Shown here piece by piece: positions 7,696 to 60,435 of a DNA stretch of 64,000 bases. The position numbers were made by a program, and so were the translations under genes. Within the stretch, counting starts at the first letter, position 1; every line of letters starts with the position of its first letter. The stretch spans positions 992,001-1,056,000 of the forward strand of contig JAUPSS010000001.1 in assembly GCA_040285825.1 (NCBI GenBank). Direction: 5' to 3'. The stretch comes from Eukaryota sp. TZLM1-RC (Eukaryota > Protista > Metamonada: BaSk clade). Below the pieces are notes generated by a model. That model was not told the origin of the DNA and did not search any database. It saw nothing but the letters and a program-made list of their open reading frames with translations.

Positions 7696-8073
7696 ATGTC
7701 TCGCAATGTGTCTTCCATAATATCTGTTCGAGAACTTAAGGCTCGTTTAGTTCAACAAGAAGAAGATCACAAGAAATCTGAAACCAAAATGCTTGCTGCC
7801 ATTAAACGTTGGCGAGATCGATGTCGAAAGATGGAAGAAACAACGTCTTCAATCAAAGCCGAAAAAGATGAACTTCTTGCAAAGCTCAAGGACCTTGAAA
7901 GCCAACCAACACAACCAACACAAGCTCCACAGCCTATTTCTTCTGAACAGTGCAATTGTGCTGATGGAGTTTGGGTTTCTGATGTACTAGATCAAATTGC
8001 TCGTACATCTTTTGAGTTGGACAACTTAGAAACCAAGGTTTGTGGTTTTGTTCGTATGACGTCGGATTTGTAG
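7696..8073 (+). CDS. Small coiled-coil hypothetical protein (125 aa)
   Basis: ATG-initiated ORF, GC-richer than its flanks, preceded by a pyrimidine-rich leader and followed by a T-rich 3' region like neighbouring host genes. Confidence 0.6.
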   Translation: MSRNVSSIISVRELKARLVQQEEDHKKSETKMLAAIKRWRDRCRKMEETTSSIKAEKDELLAKLKDLESQPTQPTQAPQPISSEQCNCADGVWVSDVLDQIARTSFELDNLETKVCGFVRMTSDL

Positions 8074-8479
8074 TTTTCATGGGATTAATGTTTAATTTAA
8101 TTGGATATTTTTTTACTAATATTGCTTTATTGTATTTGTTTTGCCATCCTGTATTACTATTATTTGTTTCATTATTGTTTTTTTGTAATTTCGATTCAGT
8201 AATTGTTTTTCACTGGTTCAGCTATCATTAAATATTTTTTTTTCAATTCTGAAAATGTTTCAATGTGCTGATAAATGGATTCTACTCCTTATTTCGTGAT
8301 AAATGTATTATTCAACATTCAATTTTCTCAAATTAATGTGTACAATCAAGATAAAATAGAGTTTAATATTAAAATAATATCAAACAACACTATATATCAT
8401 GAAGATTACTGTATGTGACTACTTCTTCAATCAATTTTGGCCGCCATAATTTTTTTTGGAGAGTAAATATTCACTTATA

Positions 8480-9803
8480 TTGAGAATGAGTCCTCAAATT
8501 ACTAGATTACCAGACATTGATATGGATATTCAGGCAGAATTATTCTCTGACGAAACAACCTTGCTTTTTGGGTTTTTAAACATTATAGGTAATCTTCAAC
8601 ATCATTGTTTTTTAATCACGATTTAATGCAGCTAGATTTACAGGTTTTAAAAAATAGATTTAATTATTTTGATTTACCATTCCTCATTGTTCCAGCTGAT
8701 TCAATAATTAATGCATTCAATCAACTTTCACCAAGATGGAGGGAAGTTTTCATCAGGGAAAATGGCTTTTATCTTTTAGATAGACTGGTATTTGCCAAGA
8801 AATTCATCAAAATCCAATATGATCATAGTTTAGGCAATCTGGCATATAAAATGATAAATGAAAAGAAAATCAAATTTCATCAGGAATTTACCAACATTTT
8901 ACCTGTTGATTGATTAGCCACTGCTCCACTTAGACAAAATTTAATTCAATATAACCTTCATGATTGTATACCATGTCTCAAACTTTTTATTTTGTTTCAA
9001 AAAGATAAATTCATTTTACCATTTTACAAAACCATTCGTGCAACCGTCAACTCAATGACTATACATTCATATGATATATTGAAACCGAAAAAAATGCTTT
9101 AAAATTTCATCAGTTACTACACATACTGCATGTTGCCTGAAGCTGTATATTCAGTTCCGTTTTAAACGCAAGTTGTCATTACCTCGTATTTCTGCCAAAA
9201 TGTGTGAATCGTAGTATGAATCAATTCAGCAACTTTTATAGATTTTGCCAACATTGTGGTTGCCAAATTTCGGCAAATCTTTTTGACAATTGACTTTTAC
9301 AGTCTAGACTTGTGGAGCTATCATAAAATGCAAGCTTTTATTCACAAGCAAAAGACTGAAAGTTGGTTGTTAAAAGTCTTGTTCAGCATTTTGGCAACCC
9401 AAAAAACATTTTGATACTAATGGGTGATCGTGGTAAAAAAGGCTCCAAAAATTTGAAACATCAGAGACCAACTCGAGGCATTGGATGGACTCAATTGCTG
9501 AAAAGGTACAGATTTGAAATATTGATGATTGATGAAGCTTTCACTTCAGCAAAATGTCCTGTTTGTTTTAAAAAGGTTGCTACGTTTTTGAGAGTATCAA
9601 ATACCGGATTCGATAGAAGAGAAAAGTCTCCAATTACTTCGTGTCATGGTTTATTAACTTGTAATAGTCAAAGTTGCAAATTCAGTAACCAAGGCTCAAC
9701 AAAGCTTTTCAATAGAAACAAGCGGGCCTATCTTATTGTGTTTCCAATTACTGAAGCCAGAATGAGTGGTAATGAAAAGCCTCAGTATCTGTGTAATAGA
9801 TAG
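8480..9803 (+). pseudogene. Degenerate, internally deleted DEDDy exonuclease-Fanzor copy (copy D)
   Basis: 8605-9050 reads RWREV..LDRLVFAKKFIKIQYDHSLGNLAY..EFTNILPVD..YNLHD..KLFILFQKDK..KTIRATV, homologous to the exonuclease/Fanzor-N junction of ORF 54616-56424. 9290-9803 reads LMGD..NLKH..PT..IDEAFTSAKCPVC..HGLLTC..FNRNK..PQYL (Fanzor RuvC/zinc finger). Confidence 0.85.
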
Positions 9804-9874
9804 ATTTTGTAATTATTTTGTGGAAGTTGAGGGAATTTCCCATACATTTATCTTCACCTACTTTCAATACATTT

Positions 9875-11473
9875 ATGAATCCTATAGACCAAGCCGAAGC
9901 TTTTATAGCTGCTGAGGCTCTTTTTCATCATGAATATGATCCTACTCTTGCAGACGGTTCTTTTTGCCCATACTGCCATTACCAAGTTGAAGCTTGCATT
10001 TGTGGTGAGGAAGAGTATTCTGACGACGACATACCTAAACCTGCACCTCACATTCTCTCCACAAACAAACATCGCACTCCCCAAGCACCTGTCCCACCCC
10101 AAGACTCACTTGACCTCTCCACTCTGACGGATACTGTCGCTAATCCCGTCAAGGCAGCTGTAAGACGTCAGGATGAGTCCAGGGTTCGCGTTCGGGATAC
10201 GAACAAGAGGGCCACTGTGGAACAAGTCCTTGACCACAAGACCAGAATGATGTTGTTCAAACTCATTGATAAGGGTAAAATTGACTCTGTTAATGGTGTA
10301 GTCAGCACTGGAAAAGAAGCAAATGTTTACCATGGAATGGGAAGAGTTGACGTCATCAATCAGAAAGATGACGTGACTGATGACGTGGCGACCAAGAAAA
10401 CTATTGAAATGGCGGTTAAAGTGTTTAAAACTTCTATTTTACAGTTTAAAGACCGGGAAAAATACCTTACTGGTGATTGGAGATTTCGCCGAGGTTATTC
10501 CAAGCATAATAGTAAAAAAATGGTTGCTCTATGGGCAGAAAAGGAATTTAGGAACCTCTCTAGAGTTCATTGTGCCGGAATTCCTTCTCCAAGACCTATT
10601 TTTATCACAAAACATATCATTTTAATGGAATTTATTGGGGAAAAGGGACATGCAGCTCCTAGACTGAAAGATGTAGGTGATCAGTTATCATTTGAACGAC
10701 TGTCTTTGCTTTATTTCTCTGCTATCCATATAGTACGTGATCTTTGGGTTTTGTGTAAGCTAGTCCACGGTGATTATTCAGAGTATAACTTGCTGGTTGA
10801 TAAGACAAAGAATCTGGTTGTGATTGATGTGGGACAGGCTGTTGAGAGCGACAATCCTTTGGCATTTGAATTCTTAAGGAATGATTTAAATAACATTAAT
10901 AAGTTTTTCAGAAAGTTTAATGTTGCAACTATTTCGCTTAAAGAATTGTTTTCACTGGTGAAAATTAGTGACGAAGATTTGTTTATACAAAAATTTGATG
11001 AACTGTTGGAATATTTCAAGTCTATTTCTGATGCTGAATTTGCAGAAGTTGCTAGAAATGATGACGTTTTCCTCAAATCATTTATCCCGCAAACCTTGGA
11101 CGAGGTTCCAAATGTGCTTAGAGATACTTTGGTTACAAGGGAAGTTCGCAGTGAGCTGTTATATTCATCGTTGTTAGCTGATGAGGAGGAGGTCAAAAAT
11201 GATAGTGATGAGGTGTCAGGTGACGTGACGACTGAAGAGGAAAGTGATGAGGAATCTGATTGTTCTAGTGGTGATTTGATTGGTGATTTTGAAGGTCAAG
11301 ATGATCTGTCAGCTCATAAAGATGACGTGGACCAAGAAACTGAAGGACTTTCCAGAAAAGAAAGGACGAAACTGGCCAAGCAAAAGCAAAGAGAAAAGAG
11401 GCAAACAAAGATACCAAAACATGTTAAAAAAAGGCATCATTCTCTAGCTGTAAAGAAAAGAAAAGGCCGATAA
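9875..11473 (+). CDS. RIO1: RIO1 atypical Ser/Thr kinase (40S maturation)
   Basis: RATVEQVLD, GVVSTGKEANVYH, AVKVFKTSILQFKDR.KY..GDWRFR, WAEKEFRNL, LVHGDYSEYN, IDVGQAVE, and C-terminal KIPKHVKK. First ATG at 9875. Confidence 0.97.
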   Translation: MNPIDQAEAFIAAEALFHHEYDPTLADGSFCPYCHYQVEACICGEEEYSDDDIPKPAPHILSTNKHRTPQAPVPPQDSLDLSTLTDTVANPVKAAVRRQDESRVRVRDTNKRATVEQVLDHKTRMMLFKLIDKGKIDSVNGVVSTGKEANVYHGMGRVDVINQKDDVTDDVATKKTIEMAVKVFKTSILQFKDREKYLTGDWRFRRGYSKHNSKKMVALWAEKEFRNLSRVHCAGIPSPRPIFITKHIILMEFIGEKGHAAPRLKDVGDQLSFERLSLLYFSAIHIVRDLWVLCKLVHGDYSEYNLLVDKTKNLVVIDVGQAVESDNPLAFEFLRNDLNNINKFFRKFNVATISLKELFSLVKISDEDLFIQKFDELLEYFKSISDAEFAEVARNDDVFLKSFIPQTLDEVPNVLRDTLVTREVRSELLYSSLLADEEEVKNDSDEVSGDVTTEEESDEESDCSSGDLIGDFEGQDDLSAHKDDVDQETEGLSRKERTKLAKQKQREKRQTKIPKHVKKRHHSLAVKKRKGR

Positions 11474-11962
11474 TGGATTTTTTCTTAGTTTTTTGGGGTT
11501 TATTTCGGAATTTTGTTAGTTTTTCAGATTGTTTGATGGAATAAATGGGGTTTCGTTTGAACAATGCTCAATACTGGTTGAAGACTCAAATCCAACATTC
11601 TAATAACTAGCTCTACTTATATAAACAATGAATTACAATCAACGGTTTCATGCCCGTACTGATCTATCTCCATCAAGTCAATACGAGATGGCATCTTTTA
11701 TTGATTTATACATTATAATGAAATATGCGAAATCGTCTCAATACTGAATTAAAGTGAGATAAGGGCGAAGTTGAAACTGTTTCTGTTTCTGTTTGAAGAA
11801 TAAATTTGGTTTAATATCATTTCCTCAATTCTTCTGGCCATCATTTGTGACAAATTGAAAAAATTTAAACGGTTTTTAATGTCAGATGATCCAACACGTC
11901 CCAGTAACGTGTAAACCATTGAAATTGTACCACCTTTCTTGATAGGTCACCATCTTTTGGAA

Positions 11963-12036
11963 TCTCCTGTGGCGTAGTGGCTTAACGCATCAGTCTTATG
12001 TACTGAGGATCGCGGGTTCGATCCCCGCCAGGAGAA
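11963..12036 (+). tRNA. tRNA-Ile (anticodon UAU)
   Basis: Cloverleaf: acceptor TCTCCTG/CAGGAGA, D stem GCGT/ACGC, anticodon stem TCAGT/ACTGA with loop CT-TAT-GT, T arm GCGGG-TTCGATC-CCCGC, discriminator A. TTTT follows at 12043-12046. Confidence 0.95.
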
Positions 12037-12267
12037 AGCTGGTTTTAACGCAGTTATTTGTGTTGTGTACAAACATGCCATTTTATATAACTAATTTTTT
12101 CTTTGACGAACAAGGAATAAAAAATCCTCAAATACACAATTAAAGCGCTACATCCTCAAAATCTGACTTCTCTACATCAAATCAATAAATAACTTACGAT
12201 TTAGAAATTTTCCTAAAAGAAGCGAATGAATCAGAAATTAATTTCATCATTGCCTCAAAAACTATTC

Positions 12268-15200
12268 TTTGACTTTGTGAATCGCTTTTCAGAGAAAATT
12301 CATCTCATTGAAAACTGTGCCAGCTCTTATCTTATTTCTTTGCAACAGGAAATTGAAATTCTTTCACCAAATATCTGGTCTAAGTGTTTTCCCTCTGATA
12401 CTGTGGAACTTCCTTCATGAAGCTTGCTCTACTTACCCCTGACTTTTGCAAAATTGTAGAAAAAAATTAAAAGTTTTAGAAAACTTGGATTATATTGTAC
12501 GTCTTAGCTTGGCTAAAGAAAAAAATCCCGTTTTTGCAAACTTTATGATTGATCTTGAAGACAGTTGCTCAAGTTGCCTAATCTCCCAAATTCCCAACAT
12601 TTATGGCCTTCGACTTAATGATCACCAATGGACCACTGCAATGAGAATGAGATGTTTTCTATGGCCTTGTTCTTTACCAAATGATTTAATTTGTCGCTGC
12701 AAGAGTGTTGTTACGCTTTCCCATATTTTAAACTGTAAGTATTTTATAACTTATCGCTCAATTGTTCATGACTCAGTTCGTGATCAATTATATGCCATGT
12801 GCAAAAGTTTCAATATAGAGGCATTTATTGAGCCACTAGTACGTAAGCTGTCTTCAGATCAAACTGATGATTCCTTTGGCAAAAGAAGGGCAGATTTAGT
12901 AGCTCCAGGGATCGATGGTGTTCTCAATGTTGATTTTGTCAAATCGATTTTGTCAGGTATTTTGGGAAAATCGAAGAGCAACTTTTTGCTATTCAAAATC
13001 TTGAAATTGACGAACATTTAGCGTTTTCGGTCCTAAATGTATGCTTTGGATTAAAATTAATCACCTTCTTCGTTCTTCGTCCAATTGCAATTGGAGAATC
13101 GTTTTCAAGAATTCTTGCGTCTCTTGTTTTCAATAGAATTGGGAAAAAAGCCAAGAAATTTTTCAGTCCGTTTCAATTTGGAATCAAGACAATTGATGGT
13201 GCTTCTTCTGCTGCTCTTTCGTCGGATGTGTTTTTTAATTCTAGTGATTCTAATTACATCTTCAATTTAGATTTTAAGAATGCTTTCAATTCTGTATCTC
13301 GTTCTTCCATTTTACCTTTGCTGCAAAAACATTTTCCTGAAGTTGAGCCTTTTTTCTATTCATTTTATGGAAAATCATCCACATTGGTCTATGAAAACTT
13401 TGACCTGCTTTCGTCTTCAGGTGTTAAACAAGGTGATCCACTTGGTCCTTTTTTCTTTTGTCTGGCAATTCATCCATTAATGTGCGAATTGAAAGAAAAA
13501 TTCCCAGAATTAGATATTGCAGCATATATGGATGACATTTCTGTAATTGCTCCTATTACAATTCTGAAACAAATAGCAACTTTTATTCAACAGCGTTATG
13601 AAGATATTGGTCTCTCATTGAATGTCTCCAAATGTTTGATTATTGGCCATGAACCAATTGATTTTTTCATTAATGATGTCAATGTCTCCTTAATCAATTA
13701 TGATCAGTCTGGTTTTCGTTTTTTGTGTTGTTATCTCGGAAATATTGATGAAGTCAAAAACCAACTTTCGACTCTGTTGACTCAATTTGGAAATGAATTA
13801 GAATCAATAGAAAATTTAAATATTGAGAAACATTTGAAATTCTTTTGTCTAAAAATTTGATATTTTTGGAAAGTTTACTCATATTTTGAGATCAACATCA
13901 CCATCAATTTCTTTGGAGTTTTGTCGCCTTTTTAATGAACAAACAACCAATTTTTTTAGCAAAATTATTGGAAATTGATGCATCTCAATTACGAAGACCC
14001 ATTTTTTGTGGTACAAATTTTGGTGGTGTTGATTTCCATAAATCAAGCTACCTTTGTAAAAGCTGCCTTTATAGGAGTTGGTAAAAATTTTATTTAAGAA
14101 TTTGTGAATCGTTTTCTCGAAAAAATTGATCTCATTGAAAATTGTGGCAGCTTTTTATCTTATTTCTTTGCAACAGAAAATTGAAAATCTTTCACCCAAT
14201 ATTTGGTCTAAATATTTCCCCTCTGTTATTGTGGAACTTCCTCCAAAAAGCTTGCTCTCCCTACCACTGACTTTTTGCAAAATTGTAGAAAAAAATTAAA
14301 AGTTTTAGAAAACTTGGATTATATTGTACGTCTTAGCTTGGCTAAAGAAAAAAATCCCGTTTTTGCAAACTTTATGATTGATCTTGAAGACAGTTGCTCA
14401 AGTTGCCTAATCTCCCAAATTCCCAACATTTATGGCCTTCGACTTAATGATCACCAATGGACCACTGCAATGAGAATGAGATGTTTTCTATGGCCTTGTT
14501 CTTTTACCAAATGATTTAATTTGTCGCTGCAAGAGTGTTGTTACGCTTTCCCATATTTTAAACTGTAAGTATTTTATAACTTATCGCTCAATTGTTCATG
14601 ACTCAGTTCGTGATCAATTATATGCCATGTGCAAAAGTTTCAATATAGAGGCATTTATTGAGCCACTAGTACGTAAGCTGTCTTCAGATCAAACTGATGA
14701 TTCCTTTGGCAAAAGAAGGGCAGATTTAGTAGCTCCAGGGATCGATGGTGTTCTCAATGTTGATTTTGTCAAATCGATTTTGTCAGGTATTTTGGGAAAA
14801 TCGAAGAGCAACTTTTTGCTATTCAAAATCTTGAAATTGACGAACATTTAGCGTTTTCGGTCCTAAATGTATGCTTTGGATTAAAATTAATCACCTTCTT
14901 CGTTCTTCGTCCAATTGCAATTGGAGAATCGTTTTCAAGAATTCTTGCGTCTCTTGTTTTCAATAGAATTGGGAAAAAAGCCAAGAAATTTTTCAGTCCG
15001 TTTCAATTTGGAATCAAGACAATTGATGGTGCTTCTTCTGCTGCTCTTTCGTCGGATGTGTTTTTTAATTCTAGTGATTCTAATTACATCTTCAATTTAG
15101 ATTTTAAGAATGCTTTCAATTCTGTATCTCGTTCTTCCATTTTACCTTTGCTGCAAAAACATTTTCCTGCAGTTGAGCCTTTTTTCTATTCATTTTATGG

Positions 15201-50844: not shown

Positions 50845-52150
50845 CAGTTTTTGTCATTGAACTGAAATAAAATCAATAAATGAATTTCCAGCTAAAAAAA
50901 ATGAATAAAAACATGAACGAAATGAGGAGCAAAGAGGCTGAAAAAAGTGAGCGATGAAGAACAATTACTATGGGTCAATAATCAAGAAGTTTTCATAATA
51001 TCTGATGTCTTTGGGCTATTTGAGAAAAAATGAATTTTATATGCAAAATTTTTTTGTTGCTTCATGGGCGAAAAACCTCAAGGGACGTTGAAATTTACTG
51101 ATCATTGTGACAATATTAACTTCTTTGATACGAAGGAAGAACTATTATTATTTTTTGTTCAATTTGTAACTCATCACAAACCTGGTGTTTTGATGGGTCT
51201 TAATTCTATAAAATTTGATGTTCCAATATAATGCATCAGGTTGGAAATTTATGGAAACGCTTTCCCAAAATTAAGGGGATCCGAAGATATTTAGTCGTTT
51301 TTTATCCGTTTTTGACAGAAAGTTCCCTCTAATTTCAATGGTTTAAATATCTGTAATTCATTTATGTATGCTAAAAAATTTATTACATAAAAGTTGAATA
51401 AATCCTTGAGATCTCTTAGTTGGTTCCTGTCAAATGAGTCTAAAGGGTATCTTCATGATACATTTAAGAACCTTTTACCAATTGATTGTTTTATAAGTAT
51501 ACCTCAAGATACCATTAATTATTGTTTCAGAGATAGTGTGCTTGGTTTAAAATTATTATTTTAAAATAATTAAAAGACCAACTTAAAAGAGATCAACAAT
51601 ATAAGTGGCTGAGATTAACAGAATTGGAGTGGTCAAGGGCATCGAGATTTCTTCAAAAATTCAGAAAATTCAAAAGAAAAGAGTAGATTATACACAATGA
51701 AATCACAGTGGAAGAAACAGAAGCTACACTATCAAAAGAATCATTAAAAACTTCCATTTATAATATTTTCTAGTCTTTTGTTGCTTCCAGTCTGGTGAAC
51801 ATAATAATTACATTTGATTACTACTGTTCAATAATATGGGTCATTCAAAAAATGTCCAACTTGCGATAACCCAGTAAATATATTTCTTGATGTTGAGAAT
51901 CCTAGACCACGGATGAGAGAGAAATATCCTATTGTGAAATGTCATGCTTTGTTAAGATGTGGATCTGATGTTTGTAGAGGAGAATGTGATGGAAAGGATC
52001 AGGTGTGGAGTCGAAACAAGTTAGCTTGTATCAACATCAAGGCAATTGTAGATTTTTTTGTAGAGGATAGTGATGGTGATAGGCCTCCATATTTGTCTTA
52101 AGTTATATCTTTTTACTACAGTAAATCTGAAGCAATTTTGGATATTTGCA
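50845..52150 (+). pseudogene. Degenerate, internally deleted DEDDy exonuclease-Fanzor copy (copy C)
   Basis: DEEQLLWVNNQEVFIIS, GVLMGLNSIKFDVP, FMYAKKFI..SLRSLSWFL..LHDTFKNLLPID..NYCFRD (exonuclease), then YKWLRLTELEWSR, SKKCPTC, CHALLRC..C, WSRNKLACINI, RPPYL (Fanzor). Confidence 0.85.
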
Positions 52151-52548
52151 TTCAATCTATCAATTGGTTCTGGAAATTCTTTTATTATTATTTTTCTCAT
52201 AGTTTCTAGAACCTCATCATCAAATCCATTAATCGCAGACAACAAAAGGACATAATAAATAAAAAAGAAATACACTCAAAAAAGTTAATTGTTATTGATC
52301 GAAGATGGACCAGTGGAAAAGAATAGCAAGACTAAATCATTGAAAACGTCTTCATGCCTCCCTTTTTAGAGATCAAGCTGTGGAACAAGACTTGTCTGGT
52401 CCTTGTTGCCAAATGTATCTATTGCAGGTTGTAGCTGGTCATTAATGGATGATTTAAAAGGATGAATTTGTCCGGATTGATCCCGTAATTAAGTAAAAAC
52501 AATATTGAAAGCTTCTTTTTTGCTGGGTCTGTAACTTGGATTATTGTA

Positions 52549-52595
52549 TGGCGTATGCCAACTATGACTAGATTTTACTAGTCAGTAAAAATGAA
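52549..52595 (-). ncRNA. Candidate omegaRNA scaffold downstream of Fanzor copy A (true boundaries unknown)
   Basis: Sense strand after the stop reads TTTTACT-gact-AGTAAAA-TCTAGTCATAGT-TGGC-atac-GCCA. The same two-hairpin layout occurs at 58763-58810 with a compensatory pair, and the first hairpin also at 52110-52127. Confidence 0.55.
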
Positions 52596-54629
52596 CTAAG
52601 TTCTAAGATAAACAGGCCTACCTTCTTCACCGGATAACCAGTGATCAAATACATTCAACATATTCAAACAAGCCATCTTGTTCCTATTCCAATACTTTGC
52701 CTTGACTGCTTCTCTACTTTCTGACTTTTTACATCGTGCTTTTGCATCATTAATACACTGAGAACTTCTACATTCCAAAAGCCCATGAGGAAATTTGAAC
52801 GGTGTTTTTTCAGCACTTTTAGGAATTGGATTCCTTGTTTTGATAGTTGTTTCAAACACTTTTTCAAAGCAAGAAGGACACTTTGAAGAAGTATGGCTTT
52901 CATCAATTAGAACAGTTTGAAAACCTCGTCTAAGAAAACAACTTATCCATCTATTGGAAGGAGTTGGGGGACTATGTTTGAGATTACTGATTGGTTTACG
53001 ACCCAAGTCCCCAATACACAATACCATTTTGTCTTTACCACCGAATGTTGTCAATAACTTGTTCACAATTCTTTCTTCAGTTTTTTGCCTATGGATATAA
53101 CTTTGGATATTATGTATCCTCCATAAGGGTAAACTATAAAATTGTTTCACTGCATTGTAGTGTTTACACTTGGCCAACATAAACTCTCTGAATTTGTGGT
53201 AATCAACAGTTTTTGAATCATGATCACGTAACCACGAATTCCATTCCTCAATGGTCATTGTCTGGTCTTCAATATTACCATTATTTTGTCTAACACAAAA
53301 TTGTAACACTTGTTTGTGTTTTCTATTGAGACGTGACCATTCACCATATGTTAGCCTCATCCATTCATATTTTTTCAGTGGATTTGAATTGGATTCTTCC
53401 GACTGTGCTCCAAATTGAATTAAATCTCTCTTTCCAAGATCACCAAAAACCACATTTTTATCACTATAATCTTCAGGATCAAGGTGATCAAAATAAGAGA
53501 CTGATACCTTGGCAATATTTGAATCAGGTTTAAAGGTTAATCCTGCGAGATCTTTTCTCACAAACTGAAAACAAATACTAATACCATTGGTTACTGCGTA
53601 ATTATTGAATTTGAAACCATTTTTTTTGAAAGATTTGTTATTAGTGTTGAACCATCTGTTCCAATAAGAATTCTGTTGATTGTGAGTTAGACTACCAATA
53701 TCAGACATACACATATAATTTTGGACTTGTTTAAATCGAGGTTTACCATCTAAATTACCCATAGCATTTTTCCCAATACCGCACAATGTTCGCGTGTCTA
53801 TTGGAAAGTATCCAGGTTTACTACCCATATTAAGTGGAATGACATTAAACAATTTTGCTTCAATTCCTTCTAAATATTGAATTATTTGAAATGATGGTTT
53901 CAGAAAATGTAAAGGATACTTTTCAAGGGTGTATTGCAGTATTTTAACTTGCACATTTTCTGTTCCATTGCCCTCATTAATTTGGATAATATTTGGGAAA
54001 ATTATAGACATCCAGTGCTCCAATAATAATGTAACACCTTCTTCCATCAAATAATTTGTGGTTTCAAACACAACATCGGTTGTAGAATCATCAAAATATT
54101 TAATAACTTCTTGTAAAAAATATACATTAGATGGGTGATCAGAATTTCCAAAATTTTGCAAGTAATTAATTAATTCATCTCGCTCCCCACCAGTCATAAA
54201 ATCCTTCACAATTTTCAAACGAAATCTAAAGAAACTGAGAAATCTTTGGCGTTGCATATAATTCAAATATTGCAAACTATCTGGAAGAACTTCCGTCCAA
54301 TTTTCCTTCATTAGATCTTCCAAATCTTTTTTTCCCATTATATGATTAATGAACCTTTTGATATATAAATGATAATTTCTTTTGATATTCAGTTCAAAAG
54401 CAGGCCACATTTCATATTGACTCATGTATTCAAATGATCTATTTACATGGTTATAATCTAGTCTAGGCATATGGCAAATTGATGAAGTGTCGGTGTATTC
54501 AGTAACACAATGGCGATACCCAGGGAATTCAGAGTTGTTATCATAAGTTCCTAACCCAAAAATAAAGTTGTTCAAATCATCACTTAACGTTGGTATTGGT
54601 TTATCGAATGCTAATTTAAACCGATGCAC
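52596..54629 (-). CDS. Fanzor1-like (TnpB family) RNA-guided nuclease body, copy A; continues ORF 54616-56424 across a 1-nt frameshift
   Basis: FNNYAVTNGISICF (WED), VFGDLGKRDL (RuvC-I), LCIGD..PPTP, LIDESHTSSKCPSC (shifted RuvC-II Glu plus CxxC), HGLLEC..C, WNRNKMACLNM (RuvC-III), RPVYL. Confidence 0.92.
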   Translation of the reverse strand: MHRFKLAFDKPIPTLSDDLNNFIFGLGTYDNNSEFPGYRHCVTEYTDTSSICHMPRLDYNHVNRSFEYMSQYEMWPAFELNIKRNYHLYIKRFINHIMGKKDLEDLMKENWTEVLPDSLQYLNYMQRQRFLSFFRFRLKIVKDFMTGGERDELINYLQNFGNSDHPSNVYFLQEVIKYFDDSTTDVVFETTNYLMEEGVTLLLEHWMSIIFPNIIQINEGNGTENVQVKILQYTLEKYPLHFLKPSFQIIQYLEGIEAKLFNVIPLNMGSKPGYFPIDTRTLCGIGKNAMGNLDGKPRFKQVQNYMCMSDIGSLTHNQQNSYWNRWFNTNNKSFKKNGFKFNNYAVTNGISICFQFVRKDLAGLTFKPDSNIAKVSVSYFDHLDPEDYSDKNVVFGDLGKRDLIQFGAQSEESNSNPLKKYEWMRLTYGEWSRLNRKHKQVLQFCVRQNNGNIEDQTMTIEEWNSWLRDHDSKTVDYHKFREFMLAKCKHYNAVKQFYSLPLWRIHNIQSYIHRQKTEERIVNKLLTTFGGKDKMVLCIGDLGRKPISNLKHSPPTPSNRWISCFLRRGFQTVLIDESHTSSKCPSCFEKVFETTIKTRNPIPKSAEKTPFKFPHGLLECRSSQCINDAKARCKKSESREAVKAKYWNRNKMACLNMLNVFDHWLSGEEGRPVYLRT

Positions 54630-56424
54630 TTTTGAAGAAAAATTTTTTCAAACATATCATTGTGTGATAGAATAGTTTGTAGTCAAAATTTGTCAAATCT
54701 TCGTTCTTCATGAATTTGACTAAAAGATACTGTTTGACACAAAATGAAGTTTGTTGTCTCACAGCAGTCATTACCTCAGATGCTATAAGTAACTCTTCTT
54801 GTAATTCTCTATACCTTGCTGTAGATGAAACAGAGGTCTTTACTGTAGACCATGACTGATTTATTATTTTATCCCTTTGGAATAGAATAAATAATTTGAA
54901 AACAAGAATTGCATCCTGAAGACAATAAGATCCTAATGTTCTCAATGCCTTATTTGAATAGAGGCTATCAATAGGTAATAAATTTTTAAACTCATCATGA
55001 AGTTTAAGTTTTGTTTCAGCAAGTAAATGGTATGCTAAATTGTTCAATGAAGCTCCATATCTAATTTTAATGAATTTTCTGGCAAACAAAAAAGTGTCCA
55101 AAATAGTGAAATTTTCATAAAACTGAATTACTTCTCTCCAACGTCGATGAAGATATAATTCATTTAGACTTATTCTTTGGGACAAAATTGGAAAAGCGAT
55201 TCCAAAATGTGATAATCGCACAGCCAACACAGGTAAATCAAAATTAAAAATATTATGGCCTAAGAAACCAACAATTTTTTTATCATAAGTGAATTCTGCA
55301 AATGACTTCAATAGATGTTGTTCATGATCAAATTTATTCAATGAGACATCAAAAACTGGTTTGTTATCATTGGTCCATGATAACACTCGTCTCGTTCCCT
55401 CTAAATTAGCAACATAATTTATACTCGAGGAATGGAAAATAGTATCCCCATTATGGTCAATTTCAAACAAAATCATAGAAATCATTAAAATTTCATGCCG
55501 TTCTAAAAAAACCTGTTGTTCTAACAATTGCTCATCTTCAGTCATTTGGCGACGTCGCTCTGACTGTGATTGCTTTTGTTGAGCTCGCAAATTGTCTAAA
55601 GTTTTATTAATATCTTTTTTCTTGGTTATTTCAACACCAATTTCCTTGGTTTCAATATCAATTGAACAAATAAGAGGGCGATCAGAGGTACTAACTTCTT
55701 GATTAAGGACAGGATCATCAATAAAAGGTTTCTTTTTAACCTTTTTCTTCTTTCCTCGAATCACATCAATTTTTTTAAATTCATTAACACTTGAAACAGA
55801 AGATTTAGGTGCAACAAGATTTTGAAAATCTCTGGGTTTCTGAGGCAGTTCAGTACTACCTCTACTTTGGACAAACCTACGTCGACTCCTCTTTGATGAA
55901 TTTTCGGCCGGAATCGGAAATCTTTGACTGTTTCTTAATGATTTTGAATAACCCAATGATTTTCTAATTTTGTTATATTGGGTCCTACGTTGTATTGGGG
56001 TCAAGGATGAATCTTTTCCAATTTGGGATAGTGTTGAAGGTTCTTGTTGCACGCTGTCTTGCTGATTGGAAGAAATCACGGCAGAAGTGATTGGTCTCAT
56101 AATTTTTACAGAAAAAACAACCTTTGTGGGAACAACAGACGATGATGATCGTCTGACAGTTTTTGAAGGTGGGGTTGATTCCACTGATGACTTTCTCTTT
56201 TTGGGCTGACAATATGGACCAGGGTTCGCCTCTACATCACCATGTTCTGTGAGCAACTGTTGTTTCAATGCTGCGCGGAACTGATATACATTGACTGAAA
56301 TATTGGCTGTTTCCGTCAACATCTCGTTTAAAGAAACAAAGTTGTGATGATTTTCTATAAAGTACTGTACATATTTCAAACAAAAAATTCCACAATCATT
56401 CACACTTTGAAGCATTTGTAACAA
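54616..56424 (-). CDS. Polyprotein segment: Ulp1-protease C-terminus - 2A - basic linker - PolB-type DEDDy exonuclease - Fanzor N-terminus
   Basis: QSVNDCGIFCL; HGDVEANPGP; PKKRK; ExoI SIDIET, ExoII GHNIFNFDL, LDTF..SLNNLA, ExoIII YCLQD; then TVKTSV..EVMTAVRQQTSFCVKQYLL, resembling the Fanzor1 first WED strand and REC helix. Confidence 0.85.
   Translation of the reverse strand: MLQMLQSVNDCGIFCLKYVQYFIENHHNFVSLNEMLTETANISVNVYQFRAALKQQLLTEHGDVEANPGPYCQPKKRKSSVESTPPSKTVRRSSSSVVPTKVVFSVKIMRPITSAVISSNQQDSVQQEPSTLSQIGKDSSLTPIQRRTQYNKIRKSLGYSKSLRNSQRFPIPAENSSKRSRRRFVQSRGSTELPQKPRDFQNLVAPKSSVSSVNEFKKIDVIRGKKKKVKKKPFIDDPVLNQEVSTSDRPLICSIDIETKEIGVEITKKKDINKTLDNLRAQQKQSQSERRRQMTEDEQLLEQQVFLERHEILMISMILFEIDHNGDTIFHSSSINYVANLEGTRRVLSWTNDNKPVFDVSLNKFDHEQHLLKSFAEFTYDKKIVGFLGHNIFNFDLPVLAVRLSHFGIAFPILSQRISLNELYLHRRWREVIQFYENFTILDTFLFARKFIKIRYGASLNNLAYHLLAETKLKLHDEFKNLLPIDSLYSNKALRTLGSYCLQDAILVFKLFILFQRDKIINQSWSTVKTSVSSTARYRELQEELLIASEVMTAVRQQTSFCVKQYLLVKFMKNEDLTNFDYKLFYHTMICLKKFFFKSASV
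56215..56241 (-). other. 2A/StopGo ribosomal skipping motif 2 (GDVEANPG/P)
   Basis: Matches the D(V/I)ExNPGP consensus, in frame within ORF 54616-56424 and preceded by LKQQLLTEH. Confidence 0.9.
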
Positions 56425-57172
56425 AAATGAGATTATATTTGAACATCCCCATTAACCAATTATTATCAAAAGAAAAATGTATTTGTTCGAATTCACCTCA
56501 ACTCACTTTGCGCCATGCTCTAAATTGCTCTAAATTGATAACTTATCGTTCTTCATTACATGATGCTGTTAGAGACACTGTTTTCAATATGGCACAAACT
56601 GCAAGGATATCGTGTATCCAAGAGCCCCTGCTGAAAGAAACACTTTCTCTGAATAATTTTGGTTCTGATGATAGAGGTGATGTATACTGTGATTGGATTG
56701 ATAATTCTGAAGCTATTGTTGACTTTGTCTCATGTAATGTTGCAAACGATACTTTGGTTCACAGAAGGAAACTTAATCCTGTGGCTGCTCTGGATTTTAA
56801 AGCAAAAGAAAAACATAGAAAATATGATAAAGAAATTGAAGATGCAAATATCGATAGAAATACACAGCTGGTTTTTATTGCTTTTCCATTTTCGATAAAT
56901 GGAAGATTATCAGTTGAAGCAGAAACTTTTTTGGATGACTTCCAAAAAATGGTTAAAGAAAAAACAATGAAAAGATTTGATATTTTTTTATGGCGTTCAC
57001 GGATTCAATTTGCCATTATTAATAGATTACCGCGGTTTTTCAATCGAATTAGAGAAGCTTTAGCTAGACAGCAAGCAAATCAAGATTTTGTAGAGGAAAT
57101 CTTGGTTTAATGATAGTCGTCCCATTAGTTATGATTTTATTTAATCAAGTGTGCAAATTCAATAAATTAGTA
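56425..57172 (+). mobile_element. 5'-truncated RLE retrotransposon (distinct subfamily) inserted antisense into the protease domain
   Basis: CICS..HALNC, HDAVRD, DRGD..VDF, KEKHRKY, FPFSINGRL, LWRSRIQF. It sits exactly between the His/Asp half and the Cys half of the protease. Confidence 0.92.
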
Positions 57173-58633
57173 TTAACTTTTAACTCTAGGCACAGGAAAA
57201 ATTTTAATACCATCAAGGCAACTTAAAATCACTGCAAATTTGTGCAATACAGCTGCAATATTGTGAGATACTTCTTGACCTTGAGTAACCATGGAATCTA
57301 TGGCACCACAATATAAATTGTAGTCTTCGTTGTTCAATTTTTTCAAAAAACCCATGACATCAATAACTAAAACAATCCAATGATTTCCCATTCCTCCAGA
57401 TTTTATGTCCATTGATGAGACAGTCTTACCAAAAACATCATTGATTGGAATAATGACAAAGCGACAATTGTGATTGTTAAGGATGGGTGTTATAATGTAA
57501 TTACGCATGGTCCGAACCATTGACTCATGCTCATCAAGGAGAGCACTCTGAACCACATTCACATTCAAAATTGAAACATGATTGGATTGGATCATCCACT
57601 TGGCTGAAAAATAATTTATTACCTCATCTACAACAAATTCCATTGGTTCTAATGATTTAATGGAGGAAAGATCGATCGAGGGACCTGGATTTGCTTCTAC
57701 GTCACCATGCGTTGTGAGGTCAGGAACCCAGTCTGAAGATAATTCGCAAATAGTGGAAGAACCAATAGTAGAAGCATCAGTAACTATCATTGGATCATTA
57801 TTGCTAGAAACAACAGTTTTAAAATGAATAGTGAAATTAGTAGCAACAAAAAATTGAGACTGGCAATCAACAACAACTACTTCATCAGAATAATAATTGA
57901 AAAATACAAAGCAGCATAAATAATAAAGAATGGATAACAAATAGACTATACAGATACATATAGACAAATCTTTCTTCACCGTAATCAACAACAAACAGTC
58001 AAAAACTGAATGATTAATGATTAGGCAGTCGTTTATGTATCTATAAACAAAGACTCTGGATAAAGAGAATTGCTCTCGATATTGCATAGAGACTTGATAT
58101 TTTGGTTTTTGGGTCTGATTATGGTTATTAGTACCCCTACTAATAACCATAATCAGACACCCCAAATTTCCCACACAATAATAAACATTTGAACCCTCGA
58201 CTTTAAAATCACTTTTTAGGTCAAAAACCTTGCCTTCAAGATTCTTAAATTCAACATTAGTTAGTTTGAGGTCAGAATTAGTTAATTCAAAGTTACCATC
58301 GTTAGCAGTAGAATGACGAACAAGAACAGTTTCTAAATCAATAATAGAATCAGTAGTAACAATAGATTGAGATTGAAAACCAACAACAACTACATCATCA
58401 AAATCAACAATAGACTTAACAAGGGTAATAAGAGGTTCATCATTAGCACATCCACTAATGACTTTTCCATCAGAATCAACTGGACCTAAAGTTTTGACAT
58501 TGGTGAAATCCAAGGTTGAGTCATCAGCATTGATGAATGAACCTGAATAAGAAGAAAAATTGATGAGAACCAAATTAGTTAAAGTAGATGGTTGAAAGTG
58601 AACCATGGATGGTTTTTCCATGGTGTGAGCCAA
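57173..58633 (-). CDS. Polyprotein 5' segment: leader - 2A - Ulp1/SENP (C48)-like protease N-terminal part
   Basis: WVPDLTTHGDVEANPGP, then SLEPMEFVVDEVINYF..FVIIPIND..GGMGNHWIVLVID..AIDS. The frame stops at the retroelement boundary. The true start codon is uncertain. Confidence 0.8.
   Translation of the reverse strand: MAHTMEKPSMVHFQPSTLTNLVLINFSSYSGSFINADDSTLDFTNVKTLGPVDSDGKVISGCANDEPLITLVKSIVDFDDVVVVGFQSQSIVTTDSIIDLETVLVRHSTANDGNFELTNSDLKLTNVEFKNLEGKVFDLKSDFKVEGSNVYYCVGNLGCLIMVISRGTNNHNQTQKPKYQVSMQYREQFSLSRVFVYRYINDCLIINHSVFDCLLLITVKKDLSICICIVYLLSILYYLCCFVFFNYYSDEVVVVDCQSQFFVATNFTIHFKTVVSSNNDPMIVTDASTIGSSTICELSSDWVPDLTTHGDVEANPGPSIDLSSIKSLEPMEFVVDEVINYFSAKWMIQSNHVSILNVNVVQSALLDEHESMVRTMRNYIITPILNNHNCRFVIIPINDVFGKTVSSMDIKSGGMGNHWIVLVIDVMGFLKKLNNEDYNLYCGAIDSMVTQGQEVSHNIAAVLHKFAVILSCLDGIKIFPVPRVKS
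57680..57706 (-). other. 2A/StopGo ribosomal skipping motif 1 (GDVEANPG/P)
   Basis: D(V/I)ExNPGP consensus with W-x-x-DLT upstream context. Confidence 0.9.
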
Positions 58634-58762: not shown

Positions 58763-60435
58763 TGCCTAACGGCATACTACGACTCGATTTTACTACTTAG
58801 TAAAAATAAACCAATTTCTACGGTAAACAGGTCTTCCCCCCACAACCAGTACTCAGATACATTCAAAATATTCAAACAAGCCAGCTTGCATATTCCAATA
58901 CTTTTCCTTGATTGCTTCTCTAATTTTCAGGTGTTTACATCGTGCTTTCGCATCATTGATATAATGATCACTTCTACATTTCAACAACCCATGTTGAGAC
59001 TTGAAAAATGTTTTTTCAGAGCTGTTAGGTATTGGATTGTTTGTTTTAATCGTCGCTCCAAACATTTTTTCAAGAAGGACAATTTGAATAAGTATGGCTT
59101 TCGTCTATTAGAACAGTTGGAAACCTCGTCTACCAAAACAACTTATCCATCTATGGGAAAGTGTGAGGGGCATGTGTTTGAGATTACTGATTGGTTTTCC
59201 ACCCAAGTCCCCAATACACTATACTTATTTCTTTTTTTACCACCGTATGTTGTTGATAAATTGTTTACACTGTTTTTTTCATTTTTTTGCCTATGGATAT
59301 AACTTTTTTTTAATAGGATAAATTTATTTTCAACGCAAACAAAACATTAAACAAAAAACTAGAACTCAATATCCTCAATACACGCATCAACATCATCAAA
59401 TCTTTTAAGCGCGCGATTTTCATACTCTATTCCTAATTGTAACAGTGCTTTGGTCAACATTTCTGGAATTGCTTTAAGAATACTGAAAACAATTCTATTG
59501 TGCCAGAAATTGAAGTTCAATTCTTTTCCTGCTCTTTCTTTTATTAAACTTCTGAAACCTTCAAGAAATTTAATGCCAGATATTCCAATGTTACCAAAAA
59601 GAGAAACAGCAAATGGAACCAACTGATACTTAACATGCTCAACACGTCCTAGCTGAGATAAGGGTTCATTGTACTTTTTGATTTTGCTCTTTTCAGCAAA
59701 GCAAAGTGGAGTTTCATCTCTTTTAGCAAAGTCAATTGCTGAGTCTTTACAAACATCAACAGTGACAACATCAACAACTTTAATAACACCATCAGAAGGC
59801 AGGAGTAATTAAATCAGCACGGCGTTTCCCAAAAGTATTTTCATTTTCATTTTCAGATGACAACCTTGGCACAAGTAGTTCGACAAAAGCTTCAATGTGA
59901 TGGCTTTTGCACATAGCGTATAGTTGGTCTCTAACAGCATCGTGAACAACTGAGCGATATGTAATATTAAATTTGCAATTAAATAAATGATTCAGATTAA
60001 TGAGCTGACCACAACGACAAATCAAATCATTTGGCACACTACATGGCCACAGGAAACACTTCATCCTGAAGGCAGTTGTCCATTGATGATCATTTAATAA
60101 TAGACCATATACATTTGGAATCTGGGAAATAAGACAACTTGAGCTACTATCCTTGAGGTCAATTAAAAAGTTTGCAAAAACGGGATTCTTTTCTTTAGCC
60201 AAGCCAAGACGAACAGTGAAATCCAAGTTTTCAAAAACTTTTAATATCTTTTTCTGCAATTTAGCATATGCAAATTTCAAGGATATAACTTGAAATATTT
60301 TGTATCCTCCATGAACTCTCTCAATTCGGAATTATTAACAGTTTTTGAATCGTGTGCACGCAAAAATGAATTCCAATCCTCAGTGGTCATTAACTGATCT
60401 TCTCTATCACCATTATTTTGTCAAACACAAAATGA
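58763..60435 (-). pseudogene. Degenerate Fanzor 3' fragment (copy B), split by a retroelement
   Basis: 58763-59305 and 60281-60435 align at DNA level to copy A 52549-53300 (HGLLKCRS..INDAKARCK..KYWN), with frameshifts. Confidence 0.9.
59306..60280 (-). mobile_element. 5'-truncated RLE retrotransposon with poly(A) and 11-bp TSD, inserted in Fanzor copy B
   Basis: GGATATAACTT at 59295-59305 and 60281-60291; T8 run at the left end; CRC..HLFNC, HDAVRD, RRADL, VPFAVSLFG, EDIEF*. Confidence 0.95.

Follow-up and report, generated by a model that had tools for sequence, protein, structure and literature searches.

The locus at 52549-58633 of the window (the whole 64,000-nucleotide stretch of contig JAUPSS010000001.1 that was analysed) is a defunct copy of a mobile element from Skoliomonas litria, ~5.9 kb long and made up almost entirely of one ORF. 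Its source, Eukaryota sp. TZLM1-RC, is Skoliomonas litria, a soda-lake protist (PMC11603281), and the Fanzor ORF of the window matches an NCBI protein of this organism. In an alignment of three S. litria copies, the ancestral ORF spans 1,957 codons with all modules in a single frame, ordered as leader (~520 aa), 2A, C48 protease (231 aa), 2A, and an NLS followed by a PolB-type DEDDy exonuclease::Fanzor1 fusion (~1,206 aa). Canonical 2A (StopGo) peptides sit precisely at both module borders. Taking the evidence together, the element probably encoded a 2A-split leader/protease/exonuclease::Fanzor polyprotein, the products of which would be released by skipping. The sequence-only reading knew of no Fanzor with such a virus-like layout, and no published description of one was found in the literature searched. 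The window copy has lost its 5' end, is interrupted by a retroelement and carries a frameshift; as a pseudogene it cannot express any product.

Table 1. Positions of the element's features in the window.
Feature	Position	Strand	Remark
ORF 1	57173-58633	-	486 aa
ORF 2	54616-56424	-	602 aa
ORF 3	52596-54629	-	677 aa
Leader remnant, 5'-truncated	57731..58587	-	homology to L005/L006 starts at 58587
2A site 1, WVPDLTTHGDVEANPG/P	57680..57730	-	W..DLT..G context class-B-like; GDVExNPGP core canonical
Protease N-terminal 169 aa (Ulp1/SENP8-like)	57176..57682	-	alignment with TZLM3-RCL paralogs passing PF02902
Protease catalytic His, in NHW	57382-57380	-	
Protease catalytic Asp, in GAIDSM	57290-57307	-	
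Insertion in protease: antisense piece of a non-LTR-like, high-copy retroelement, 5'-truncated	56412..57175	+	
Protease C-terminal part, QSVNDCG nucleophile	56218..56411	-	Cys codon within 56383-56403; uninterrupted in P0040
2A site 2, QQLLTEHGDVEANPG/P	56215..56262	-	LL where F2A has hydrophobic leucines
NLS-like PKKRK	56191..56205	-	directly after second 2A, five residues past new N-terminus of last product
PolB-type DEDDy 3'-5' exonuclease domain	54640..55740	-	PF03104, Pol delta match, AF2/Foldseek
ExoI DIE	55645-55665	-	
ExoII NIFNFD	55225-55260	-	
ExoIII YCLQD	54904-54927	-	
A-run with private +1 frameshift	54643..54648	-	between exonuclease frame and Fanzor frame
Fanzor1 moiety	52596..54642	-	stop codon 52596-52598
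RuvC-I D	53424-53447	-	GDLGKRD
RuvC-II E (LIDES) and zinc finger	52755-52910	-	
RuvC-III N, in WNRN	52662-52694	-	
3' end of repeat unit, two short hairpins (TGACTAG...CTAGTCA; TGGC...GCCA)	52548..52595	-	L005 homology stops at 52548

Lesions of the window copy and the ancestral frame

The three co-linear minus-strand ORFs described in the sequence-only reading are present as claimed, and the antisense retroelement said to separate ORF 1 from ORF 2 is real. The inserted fragment spans 56408-57167 in public contigs at several-hundred-fold depth and has 98-99% identical copies at other sites; the ORF it contains is similar to an RVT_1 protein over the part that follows the RT domain (E 4e-10). 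Because an 8-bp target duplication flanks it (57176-57183 and 56404-56411, 7/8 positions matching), the real interruption amounts to 772 nt, made up of 56412-57175 and one copy of the duplication; the excision originally suggested, 56425-57172, was a few bases off. Deleting the 772 nt restores the frame and yields ...PRVQSVNDCG..., the same residues as in the paralog protein P0040. The 1-nt frameshift placed in the A-run was also recovered, both by alignment with the GEM-RC1 copy, in which exonuclease and Fanzor share one frame, and in the three-copy alignment, where the insertion is private to the window. A 5' truncation of the leader had been missed: homology to full copies begins at 58587, and ~660 nt with the ATG and a signal-peptide-like start (the full leader is seen in P0038) are absent.

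Two S. litria paralogs at other loci (L005, L006) are 98% identical to the window copy over 5.3-5.7 kb, and both are free of the insertion and of the frameshift. L006 keeps a single frame between 10723 and 15234, apart from three point stops; its 789-codon open stretch covers the C-terminal half of the protease, the 2A, the NLS, the exonuclease and the Fanzor N-terminus. No internal stop or frameshift occurs in more than one of the three copies, and the terminal stop (codon 1958) is common to all. Since all lesions are private, the common ancestor had one ORF of the length given above, and the proposed co-linearity of protease, exonuclease and Fanzor in one frame holds.

Relics crowd the region: three more Fanzor fragments lie within 10 kb, as do several pieces of retroelements. 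In such a transposon graveyard the three ORFs could be unrelated neighbouring fragments, and the polyprotein a read-through artefact. We find this hardly credible and regard it as refuted by L005, L006 and the private lesions: the same arrangement recurs at other loci without the insertion and the frameshift, in one case in a single frame throughout, and orthologous layouts exist in two other species.

Skoliomonas sp. TZLM3-RCL carries intact exonuclease::Fanzor ORFs of 1,096-1,281 aa. Three of its proteins (P0006, P0028, P0029) carry the exonuclease and a complete Fanzor, and P0034 is a leader-2A-exonuclease-Fanzor in a single frame. An exhaustive HMMER search that set the exonuclease ORF against 1.84 billion representatives recovered relatives sharing the architecture only in three Skoliomonas genomes. 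The second 2A is absent from the protease-bearing TZLM3-RCL subfamily, so the double-2A layout is lineage-specific, a point against the polyprotein explanation.

Protease, exonuclease and Fanzor1 domains

The protease is a C48 cysteine protease, nearest to the deNEDDylase SENP8/NEDP1. Its NHW, GAIDSM and QSVNDCG motifs align to HWSLL, HYDSH and QQNSYDCG of SENP8, giving the His-Asp-Cys triad and the Gln before the Cys. The window pieces of the protease fall below the Pfam threshold and give no PF02902 match, and P0040 matches weakly on its C-terminal stretch (16.1 bits; cut-off 20.7); P0043 (37.9 bits) and P0041 (23.0 bits) of TZLM3-RCL both pass. With a profile built from the TZLM3-RCL relatives, the match extends along the entire S. 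litria protease (27.7 bits, in a paralog with X at its stop). For the 169-aa window piece, the low-confidence model (pLDDT 50.7) has only C48/CE proteases among its top 15 Foldseek matches, with NEDP1/SENP8 as the best (E 3e-3, TM 0.3). The protease foreseen from the sequence as a free product of ~235 aa is borne out in its C48 identity and predicted size. In the window, the codon of the Gln before the Cys belongs to the downstream one of the two target-duplication copies.

The exonuclease had been recognised by its DEDDy motifs (ExoI DxE, ExoII Nx2-3(F/Y)D, ExoIII Yx3D), the columns of which hardly vary across an alignment of 25 sequences, and its PolB type was recovered by several routes. 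PF03104 scores 30.8 bits on the window ORF (cut-off 23) with relatives reaching 52 bits, and Pol delta (6s1m) is matched with E 1.9e-3. The AF2 model (pLDDT 78.6) has nothing but family-B polymerases and complexes containing them among its top 50 Foldseek PDB matches (Pol delta, alpha, epsilon, HSV, RB69; best E 1e-8). The ORF continues from the exonuclease straight to the Fanzor, with no palm or fingers of a polymerase in between. The predicted fusion product agrees with the ~1200 aa and the NLS-like PKKRK originally proposed; the intact relative P0006 begins with PPKRRK, and N-terminal NLSs are known in Fanzors (PMC10530073).

The RuvC and zinc-finger motifs assigned to Fanzor were likewise found. 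The moiety matches SpuFz1 (8gkh, E 1e-15 to 2.9e-15) and PpFz1 (9cf0, E 3e-12) in phmmer searches against the PDB, and its catalytic columns map onto D383, E541 and D606 of SpuFz1. The third position is Asn (WNRN) in each skoliomonad copy seen, in three species. GtFz1 is active with a D-E-N triad, and the D606N variant of SpuFz1 is hyperactive, exceeding the wild type (PMC11423790); by analogy with GtFz1, the skoliomonad RuvC would not be nuclease-dead. The zinc finger HTSSKCPSC ... HGLLECRSSQC satisfies the motif of Bao and Jurka, [TS][TS]-x-x-C4 between RuvC-II and RuvC-III.

Like SpuFz1, PpFz1 and GtFz1, the skoliomonad protein has the RuvC-I Asp, the relocated RuvC-II Glu, the zinc ribbon and an N-terminal NLS, with the C-terminal 370 aa aligning to SpuFz1 and PpFz1, the third catalytic Asn shared with GtFz1, and the gene lying on a multi-copy element. 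It differs in ~530 additional N-terminal residues, which are the PolB-type exonuclease, and in forming part of a 2A polyprotein that also includes a protease. SpuFz1 elements have 30-nt inverted repeats, whereas the skoliomonad element has none; its 5.9-kb repeat unit contains no TIR or TSD, nor any transposase, as the sequence-only reading had stated. The 3' end of the unit is where the 3' part of the omegaRNA and the guide junction would be expected; no omegaRNA was recognised, the last 253 nt folding no better than shuffles (z -0.56) with only two short terminal hairpins.

The 2A sites and the leader

Both HGDVEANPGP motifs reported earlier lie in the ORF frames with an exact GDVEANPGP, site 1 at the leader/protease border and site 2 at the protease/NLS-exonuclease border. 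From composition, 3e-5 occurrences of D[VI]ExNPGP are expected per window against the two observed, and 300 Markov simulations produced none. Across HGDVEANPGP the two sites differ by six synonymous and no non-synonymous changes, and the 2A core is under amino-acid constraint with synonymous drift. The pattern W..DLT..GD(V/I)(E/H)xNPGP is kept in 10/11 leader-bearing relatives from two species, and the site 1 context is conserved in relatives from three species. Functional 2A determinants are hydrophobic leucines in class A or W...DLT in class B (bioRxiv 10.64898/2026.09.24.754024). The W-x-x-D-L-T-x-x-G of site 1 agrees with the class B motif published as active; site 2 carries LL at -13/-12, like L6/L7 of F2A; and the E-to-H variants of TZLM3-RCL carry the sole substitution tolerated at that position in P2A. 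Judged by their residues, both sites fit the published determinants.

A protease between the two sites could itself process the polyprotein, mainly or additionally, as a maturation enzyme rather than a host-directed deNEDDylase/deSUMOylase, with NPGP conserved for another reason or skipping inefficient. The protease-bearing TZLM3-RCL subfamily, without a 2A between protease and exonuclease, presumably frees or tolerates its protease, and 2A and proteases are often combined in viral polyproteins. We nevertheless consider self-processing quite improbable: C48 enzymes cleave after the Gly-Gly of a UBL, and neither a UBL nor a GG site is visible at the borders; subfamilies that lack the protease (P0034, P0007) still retain the 2A; and the constrained core with its fit to published determinants favours release by skipping.

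The leader is variable; it contains repeats and a TM-like hydrophobic segment (57899-57961, by hydropathy) and shows a weak beta-helix resemblance. It may have no part in the element's own function and be a captured or trapped fragment of a host surface-protein gene that provided promoter and start codon, the first 2A serving only to shed it and the repeat unit having spread as a composite. The unit begins only 13 nt before the leader ATG, the signal-peptide-like start and TM-like segment look like those of a secreted or membrane protein, and identity between subfamilies is 30%; non-LTR retrotransposons, too, reportedly bear 2A peptides at the start of their ORFs. This origin seems somewhat unlikely, given that the leader is 96-98% identical among three copies at unrelated loci and that a search for a stand-alone host homolog found none. 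Moreover, the residues right before the 2A are homologous in S. litria and TZLM3-RCL, so at least the C-terminal part of the leader travels with the element.

Predicted products and known systems

Ulp1/C48 proteases are cargo of eukaryotic DNA transposons such as plant MULEs. The skoliomonad element likewise carries a C48 domain, but one that is SENP8/NEDP1-like, accompanies a Fanzor instead of a transposase, and lies between two 2A sites, from which a free 231-aa enzyme would result. The tethering of a 3'-5' exonuclease to an RNA-guided DNA nuclease in one polypeptide reportedly has an engineered counterpart in TREX2-SpCas9; the skoliomonad fusion is natural, and in place of TREX2 or T5 it has the proofreading domain of a family-B polymerase. 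The 2A arrangement resembles that of picornavirus-like polyproteins and L1Tc/Ingi-type non-LTR retrotransposons in the D(V/I)ExNPG/P core at module borders of one long ORF, in the class-B-like W..DLT upstream context and, for the retrotransposons, in the N-terminal leader-2A (as reported by Odon et al. 2013). Unlike 2A retrotransposons, the carrier is a DNA-level Fanzor element without a reverse transcriptase. In the literature examined, cellular-genome 2A peptides belong to retrotransposons and a few host gene families, with none reported for TnpB/Fanzor elements.

In the ancestral element, one mRNA carrying all modules would be translated once, and the ribosome would skip the Gly-Pro bond at each 2A, thereby releasing leader, protease and exonuclease::Fanzor as three separate proteins. 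Only the last would bear an NLS and enter the nucleus, where the Fanzor would cut DNA under omegaRNA guidance and the exonuclease attached to it would trim the 3' ends. The benefit of a 3'-5' exonuclease for homology-directed copying is not obvious, which speaks against this explanation.

It also counts against it that all three S. litria copies examined are pseudogenes and that the differences among them look neutral (~2.2 non-synonymous per synonymous differing codon); the element family may have died out in S. litria. The published Fanzor surveys examined make no mention of metamonads, and Skoliomonas is, as far as the literature searched shows, the first metamonad Fanzor host.

Lesions of the window copy and the ancestral frame

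The three minus-strand ORFs described in the sequence-only reading were recovered by ORF listing exactly where it had placed them (see table), with the motif HGDVEANPGP in each of the first two. Among public contigs mapped to 52634-58633, several-hundred-fold depth was confined to 56408-57167, and none of them ran across the retroelement insertion between the first and middle ORFs. Copies of this insert, 98-99% identical, are found at other loci, and its ORF matches an RVT_1 protein in the portion that follows the reverse-transcriptase domain. The insert is therefore a fragment of a non-LTR-like retroelement, antisense and 5'-truncated, with an 8-bp target duplication on both sides (57176-57183 and 56404-56411). 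The proposal that the insert interrupts the frame and that its excision restores it was correct, but the span to be removed is 56412-57183 and not 56425-57172; the joined frames then read PRVQSVNDCG, which is found uninterrupted in the annotated paralog protein P0040. The second break, predicted as a 1-nt frameshift, is one additional A, and with the extra base discounted the junction aligns residue for residue with the GEM-RC1 relative, whose exonuclease and Fanzor share a single frame. A third lesion had been overlooked: homology to full copies starts only at 58587, and therefore the window copy lacks the initial 660 nt of its leader, ATG included.

Coordinates of the ORFs, lesions, relatives and relics discussed in the text
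Feature	Sequence	Positions	Strand	Remark
First ORF	window	57173-58633	-	
Middle ORF	window	54616-56424	-	exonuclease
Last ORF	window	52596-54629	-	Fanzor
A-run with additional A	window	54643-54648	-	
TM-like leader segment	window	57899-57961		
Leader part omitted in one contig	window	58056-58231		174 nt
Signal-peptide-like leader start	L006 (P0038)	10001-10100		
P0011 gene model	L003, TZLM3-RCL	8001-12672		annotated 898 aa
P0007 patch	L007, JAUPSS010000002	11430-11595		166 nt
Exonuclease/Fanzor relic	window	8608-9843 + 9875-11473	+	internal deletion
Older Fanzor relic, split	window	58776-59307 + 60282-60432	-	retroelement piece 59359-60280 between
Third Fanzor relic	window	51112-52095	+	just past right end of element

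Two paralogs, L005 (JAUPSS010000004) and L006 (JAUPSS010000007), were retrieved via their annotated proteins. Both share 98% identity with the window copy and have neither the retroelement nor the frameshift. L006 keeps one frame over 4.5 kb with three point stops. An open stretch of 789 codons between two of these stops starts from the Asp region of the protease, takes in the second 2A, NLS and entire exonuclease, and reaches into the Fanzor, which answers the refuting condition of the sequence-only reading that no uninterrupted copy would join protease, exonuclease and Fanzor. The three copies were aligned and compared one codon at a time, with a majority comparison for the lesion count; database searches were made with the pieces taken singly. 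Every stop and frame-breaking indel, including the extra A of the window, was private to one copy, with a sense codon in the others, while the terminal stop (codon 1958) was common to the window and L005. Because all lesions are private and the terminal stop is shared, the common ancestor was an ORF of 1,957 codons. This ORF would thus have encoded three products: one of ~520 aa ending at the first Gly/Pro, one of 231 aa between both 2A sites and one of ~1,206 aa after the second 2A, the latter two predicted sizes being in concordance with the ~235 and ~1200 aa put forward earlier. All S. litria copies examined (n=3) are dead. Codons that differ between copies show ~2.2 non-synonymous changes per synonymous one, a neutral-looking ratio, as expected for transposon copies that decay once inserted.

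Domains and 2A sites of the predicted products

In the middle ORF, Pfam DNA_pol_B_exo1 scored 30.8 bits (cut-off 23) and the claimed ExoI, ExoII and ExoIII residues were all there. Among sequences with solved structures, human Pol delta came nearest. When the window's own sequence was modelled with AlphaFold (pLDDT 78.6), the Foldseek top 50 contained only family-B polymerases or their complexes (best E 1e-8). The Fanzor assignment was borne out by phmmer against PDB sequences, in which the last ORF matched the Fanzor1 of Spizellomyces (8gkh, 2.9e-15) and that of Parasitella; at NCBI, the same ORF has a match in a hypothetical protein listed under 'Eukaryota sp. TZLM1-RC'. Alignment with SpuFz1 put Asp on D383, Glu on E541 and Asn on D606, the last being found in all skoliomonad copies. 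A nuclease-dead RuvC (the Asn of WNRN) with the exonuclease taking over was considered and rejected: according to the Cell 2024 structure paper (PMC11423790), GtFz1 is active with a natural D-E-N triad and SpuFz1 D606N cleaves better than the wild type.

The putative C48 protease is the weakest domain identification of the element. It stands on relatives from TZLM3-RCL, which exceed the Pfam threshold (P0043, 37.9 bits), with P0011 matching SENP8 in the PDB at 4.8e-5, and on the alignment of His, Asp and Gln..Cys; a profile of the relatives covers the S. litria protease end to end at 27.7 bits, with a paralog read through one stop as X. The window's own protease pieces fall below the Pfam threshold, and the 169-aa piece had no phmmer match in the PDB. 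A model of that piece gave NEDP1/SENP8 first and then only other CE-clan proteases, but because it is poor (pLDDT 50.7) these C48 fold matches are suggestive only.

Both anticipated 2A motifs are present, two being observed in the window versus 3e-5 expected by chance. The two HGDVEANPGP sites differ at six third codon positions with no amino-acid change, which means purifying selection on the peptide and not a recent duplication. The pattern W-x-x-D-L-T-x-x-G-D-(V/I)-(E/H)-x-N-P-G-P describes site 1 together with the corresponding sites of the relatives, and the motif reported as enriched in active class B 2A peptides is W(Y/I)RDLTEEG(V/I)EPNPGP (2026 deep-mutational preprint, bioRxiv 10.64898/2026.09.24.754024). 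Among substitutions at the conserved D, E and N positions, P2A is reported to tolerate E14H alone (same preprint), and exactly this E-to-H change is carried by the TZLM3-RCL variants DVHKNPGP and DIHPNPGP. Site 2 has Leu-Leu where F2A has essential leucines. The predicted third product begins PYCQPKKRK, so that the NLS-like PKKRK noticed earlier is N-terminal, like those shown for other Fanzors (PMC10530073).

The leader had no Pfam match, and its resemblance to a beta-helix in Atlas was weak and came from a low-confidence model. In P0038, the full-length leader has a signal-peptide-like start, MKLLVLLLLLTAVFA, followed by repeats of PNPNPTT and others resembling a beta-helix; ~70 aa ahead of the first 2A lies a TM-like segment of strong hydrophobicity. 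For a gene encoding a nuclear nuclease, such a leader is a strange first product. One same-organism public contig omits 58 codons of the leader in frame and an identical gap is found in L005; leader length therefore differs among copies.

Relatives and module combinations

When the middle ORF was used in an exhaustive HMMER scan, the architecture was found in the three sequenced skoliomonads only, and outside them the scan returned only ordinary family-B polymerases (E ~1e-4). TZLM3-RCL is the deepest branch within the genus Skoliomonas. Its proteins P0006, P0028 and P0029 contain the exonuclease together with a Fanzor that is complete up to the last residue, and P0006 (1,281 aa) has its own ATG with PPKRRK close to the start. 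P0034 is a leader-2A-exonuclease-Fanzor in a single frame interrupted by a Gypsy element, and P0041 and P0043 are leader-2A-C48 protease. Three module sets are found, exonuclease::Fanzor alone, with leader-2A added and with leader-2A-protease added; the second 2A behind the protease was seen in the S. litria family only. Because skoliomonad relatives carry differing combinations, the module set is old and combinatorial.

P0011 was rejected as an uninterrupted protease-exonuclease-Fanzor gene, since its gene model spans two real frameshifts, bridged by short fake 'introns'; its protease is also without the strand bearing the catalytic Asp. Likewise, a number of this family's gene models at NCBI are stitched pseudogenes. 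P0028 (2,027 aa) has a DEAD-box helicase part N-terminal to the exonuclease-Fanzor, which may be an adjacent gene fused into the model.

The P0007 patch, comprising the 2A core and NLS region, shares 96-97% identity with the window family, whereas outside it the P0007 subfamily shows only 30-40% protein identity. The 2A of P0007 is of hybrid type, resembling site 1 in its upstream part (WIPDLT) and identical to site 2 downstream. Subfamilies seem to have recombined, or undergone gene conversion, at the 2A repeat, a process that would also remove or add the protease cassette.

Element ends, surroundings and significance

The repeat unit extends from 13 nt before the leader ATG to ~50 nt past the Fanzor stop. 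No TIR or other inverted repeats, TSD, poly(A) or second gene were found at its ends or within it, and hence, as had been claimed, there is no transposase. Short hairpins occur at the right ends of several subfamilies; the last 253 nt, the putative omegaRNA region, folded no better than shuffles (z -0.56).

Elsewhere in the window, ordinary host genes such as Hsp70, RIO1 kinase, Pus10, SMC and RCC1 are interspersed with transposon debris. The relic with an internal deletion terminates in a GGGAATTTCCC palindrome; ~31 nt further downstream, in frame and on the same strand, is the ATG of the RIO1 kinase (Pfam RIO1, 4e-56), so that this relic comes near the start codon but does not abut it. The older, split relic is ~80% identical in DNA and 53% in protein, and a mere 190 nt separates its 3' end from the shortened leader downstream. 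The clustering of Fanzor relics could reflect insertion close to earlier copies or a mere graveyard.

One speculative and rather unlikely reading is a transposase-free, self-contained RNA-guided homing element, in which one translation would yield a guided nuclease with a tethered end-processing exonuclease and a free SENP8-like deNEDDylase/deSUMOylase redirecting the host double-strand-break response toward element-copying repair. If true, the element would amount to an 'editor plus repair-pathway modulator' cassette of natural origin that uses viral 2A technology for its expression.

Fanzors are eukaryotic RNA-guided nucleases in development as compact genome editors, and little is known of their natural biology, i.e. 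their expression, partners and element spread. In agreement with the sequence-only reading, which knew of no Fanzor with a polyprotein layout, we found no natural exonuclease fusion, protease partner or 2A layout for any Fanzor in the literature searched (full text, including the three surveys and the structure paper in Cell). Within that literature, the predicted virus-like 2A partitioning of a DNA-element gene, the natural fusion to a proofreading-type exonuclease and the putative co-expression of a ubiquitin-like-protein protease are unreported for any Fanzor. The natural exonuclease::Fanzor fusion parallels engineered fusions that alter editing outcomes, and the intact copies of Skoliomonas sp. 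TZLM3-RCL are proteins open to direct testing. TZLM1-RC is the type strain of Skoliomonas litria, an anaerobic haloalkaliphilic metamonad (PMC11603281). From cellular genomes, 2A peptides have been reported in retrotransposons and in a small number of host gene families. The sites described here would add a deep-branching metamonad and an element of non-retro type to the range of StopGo.
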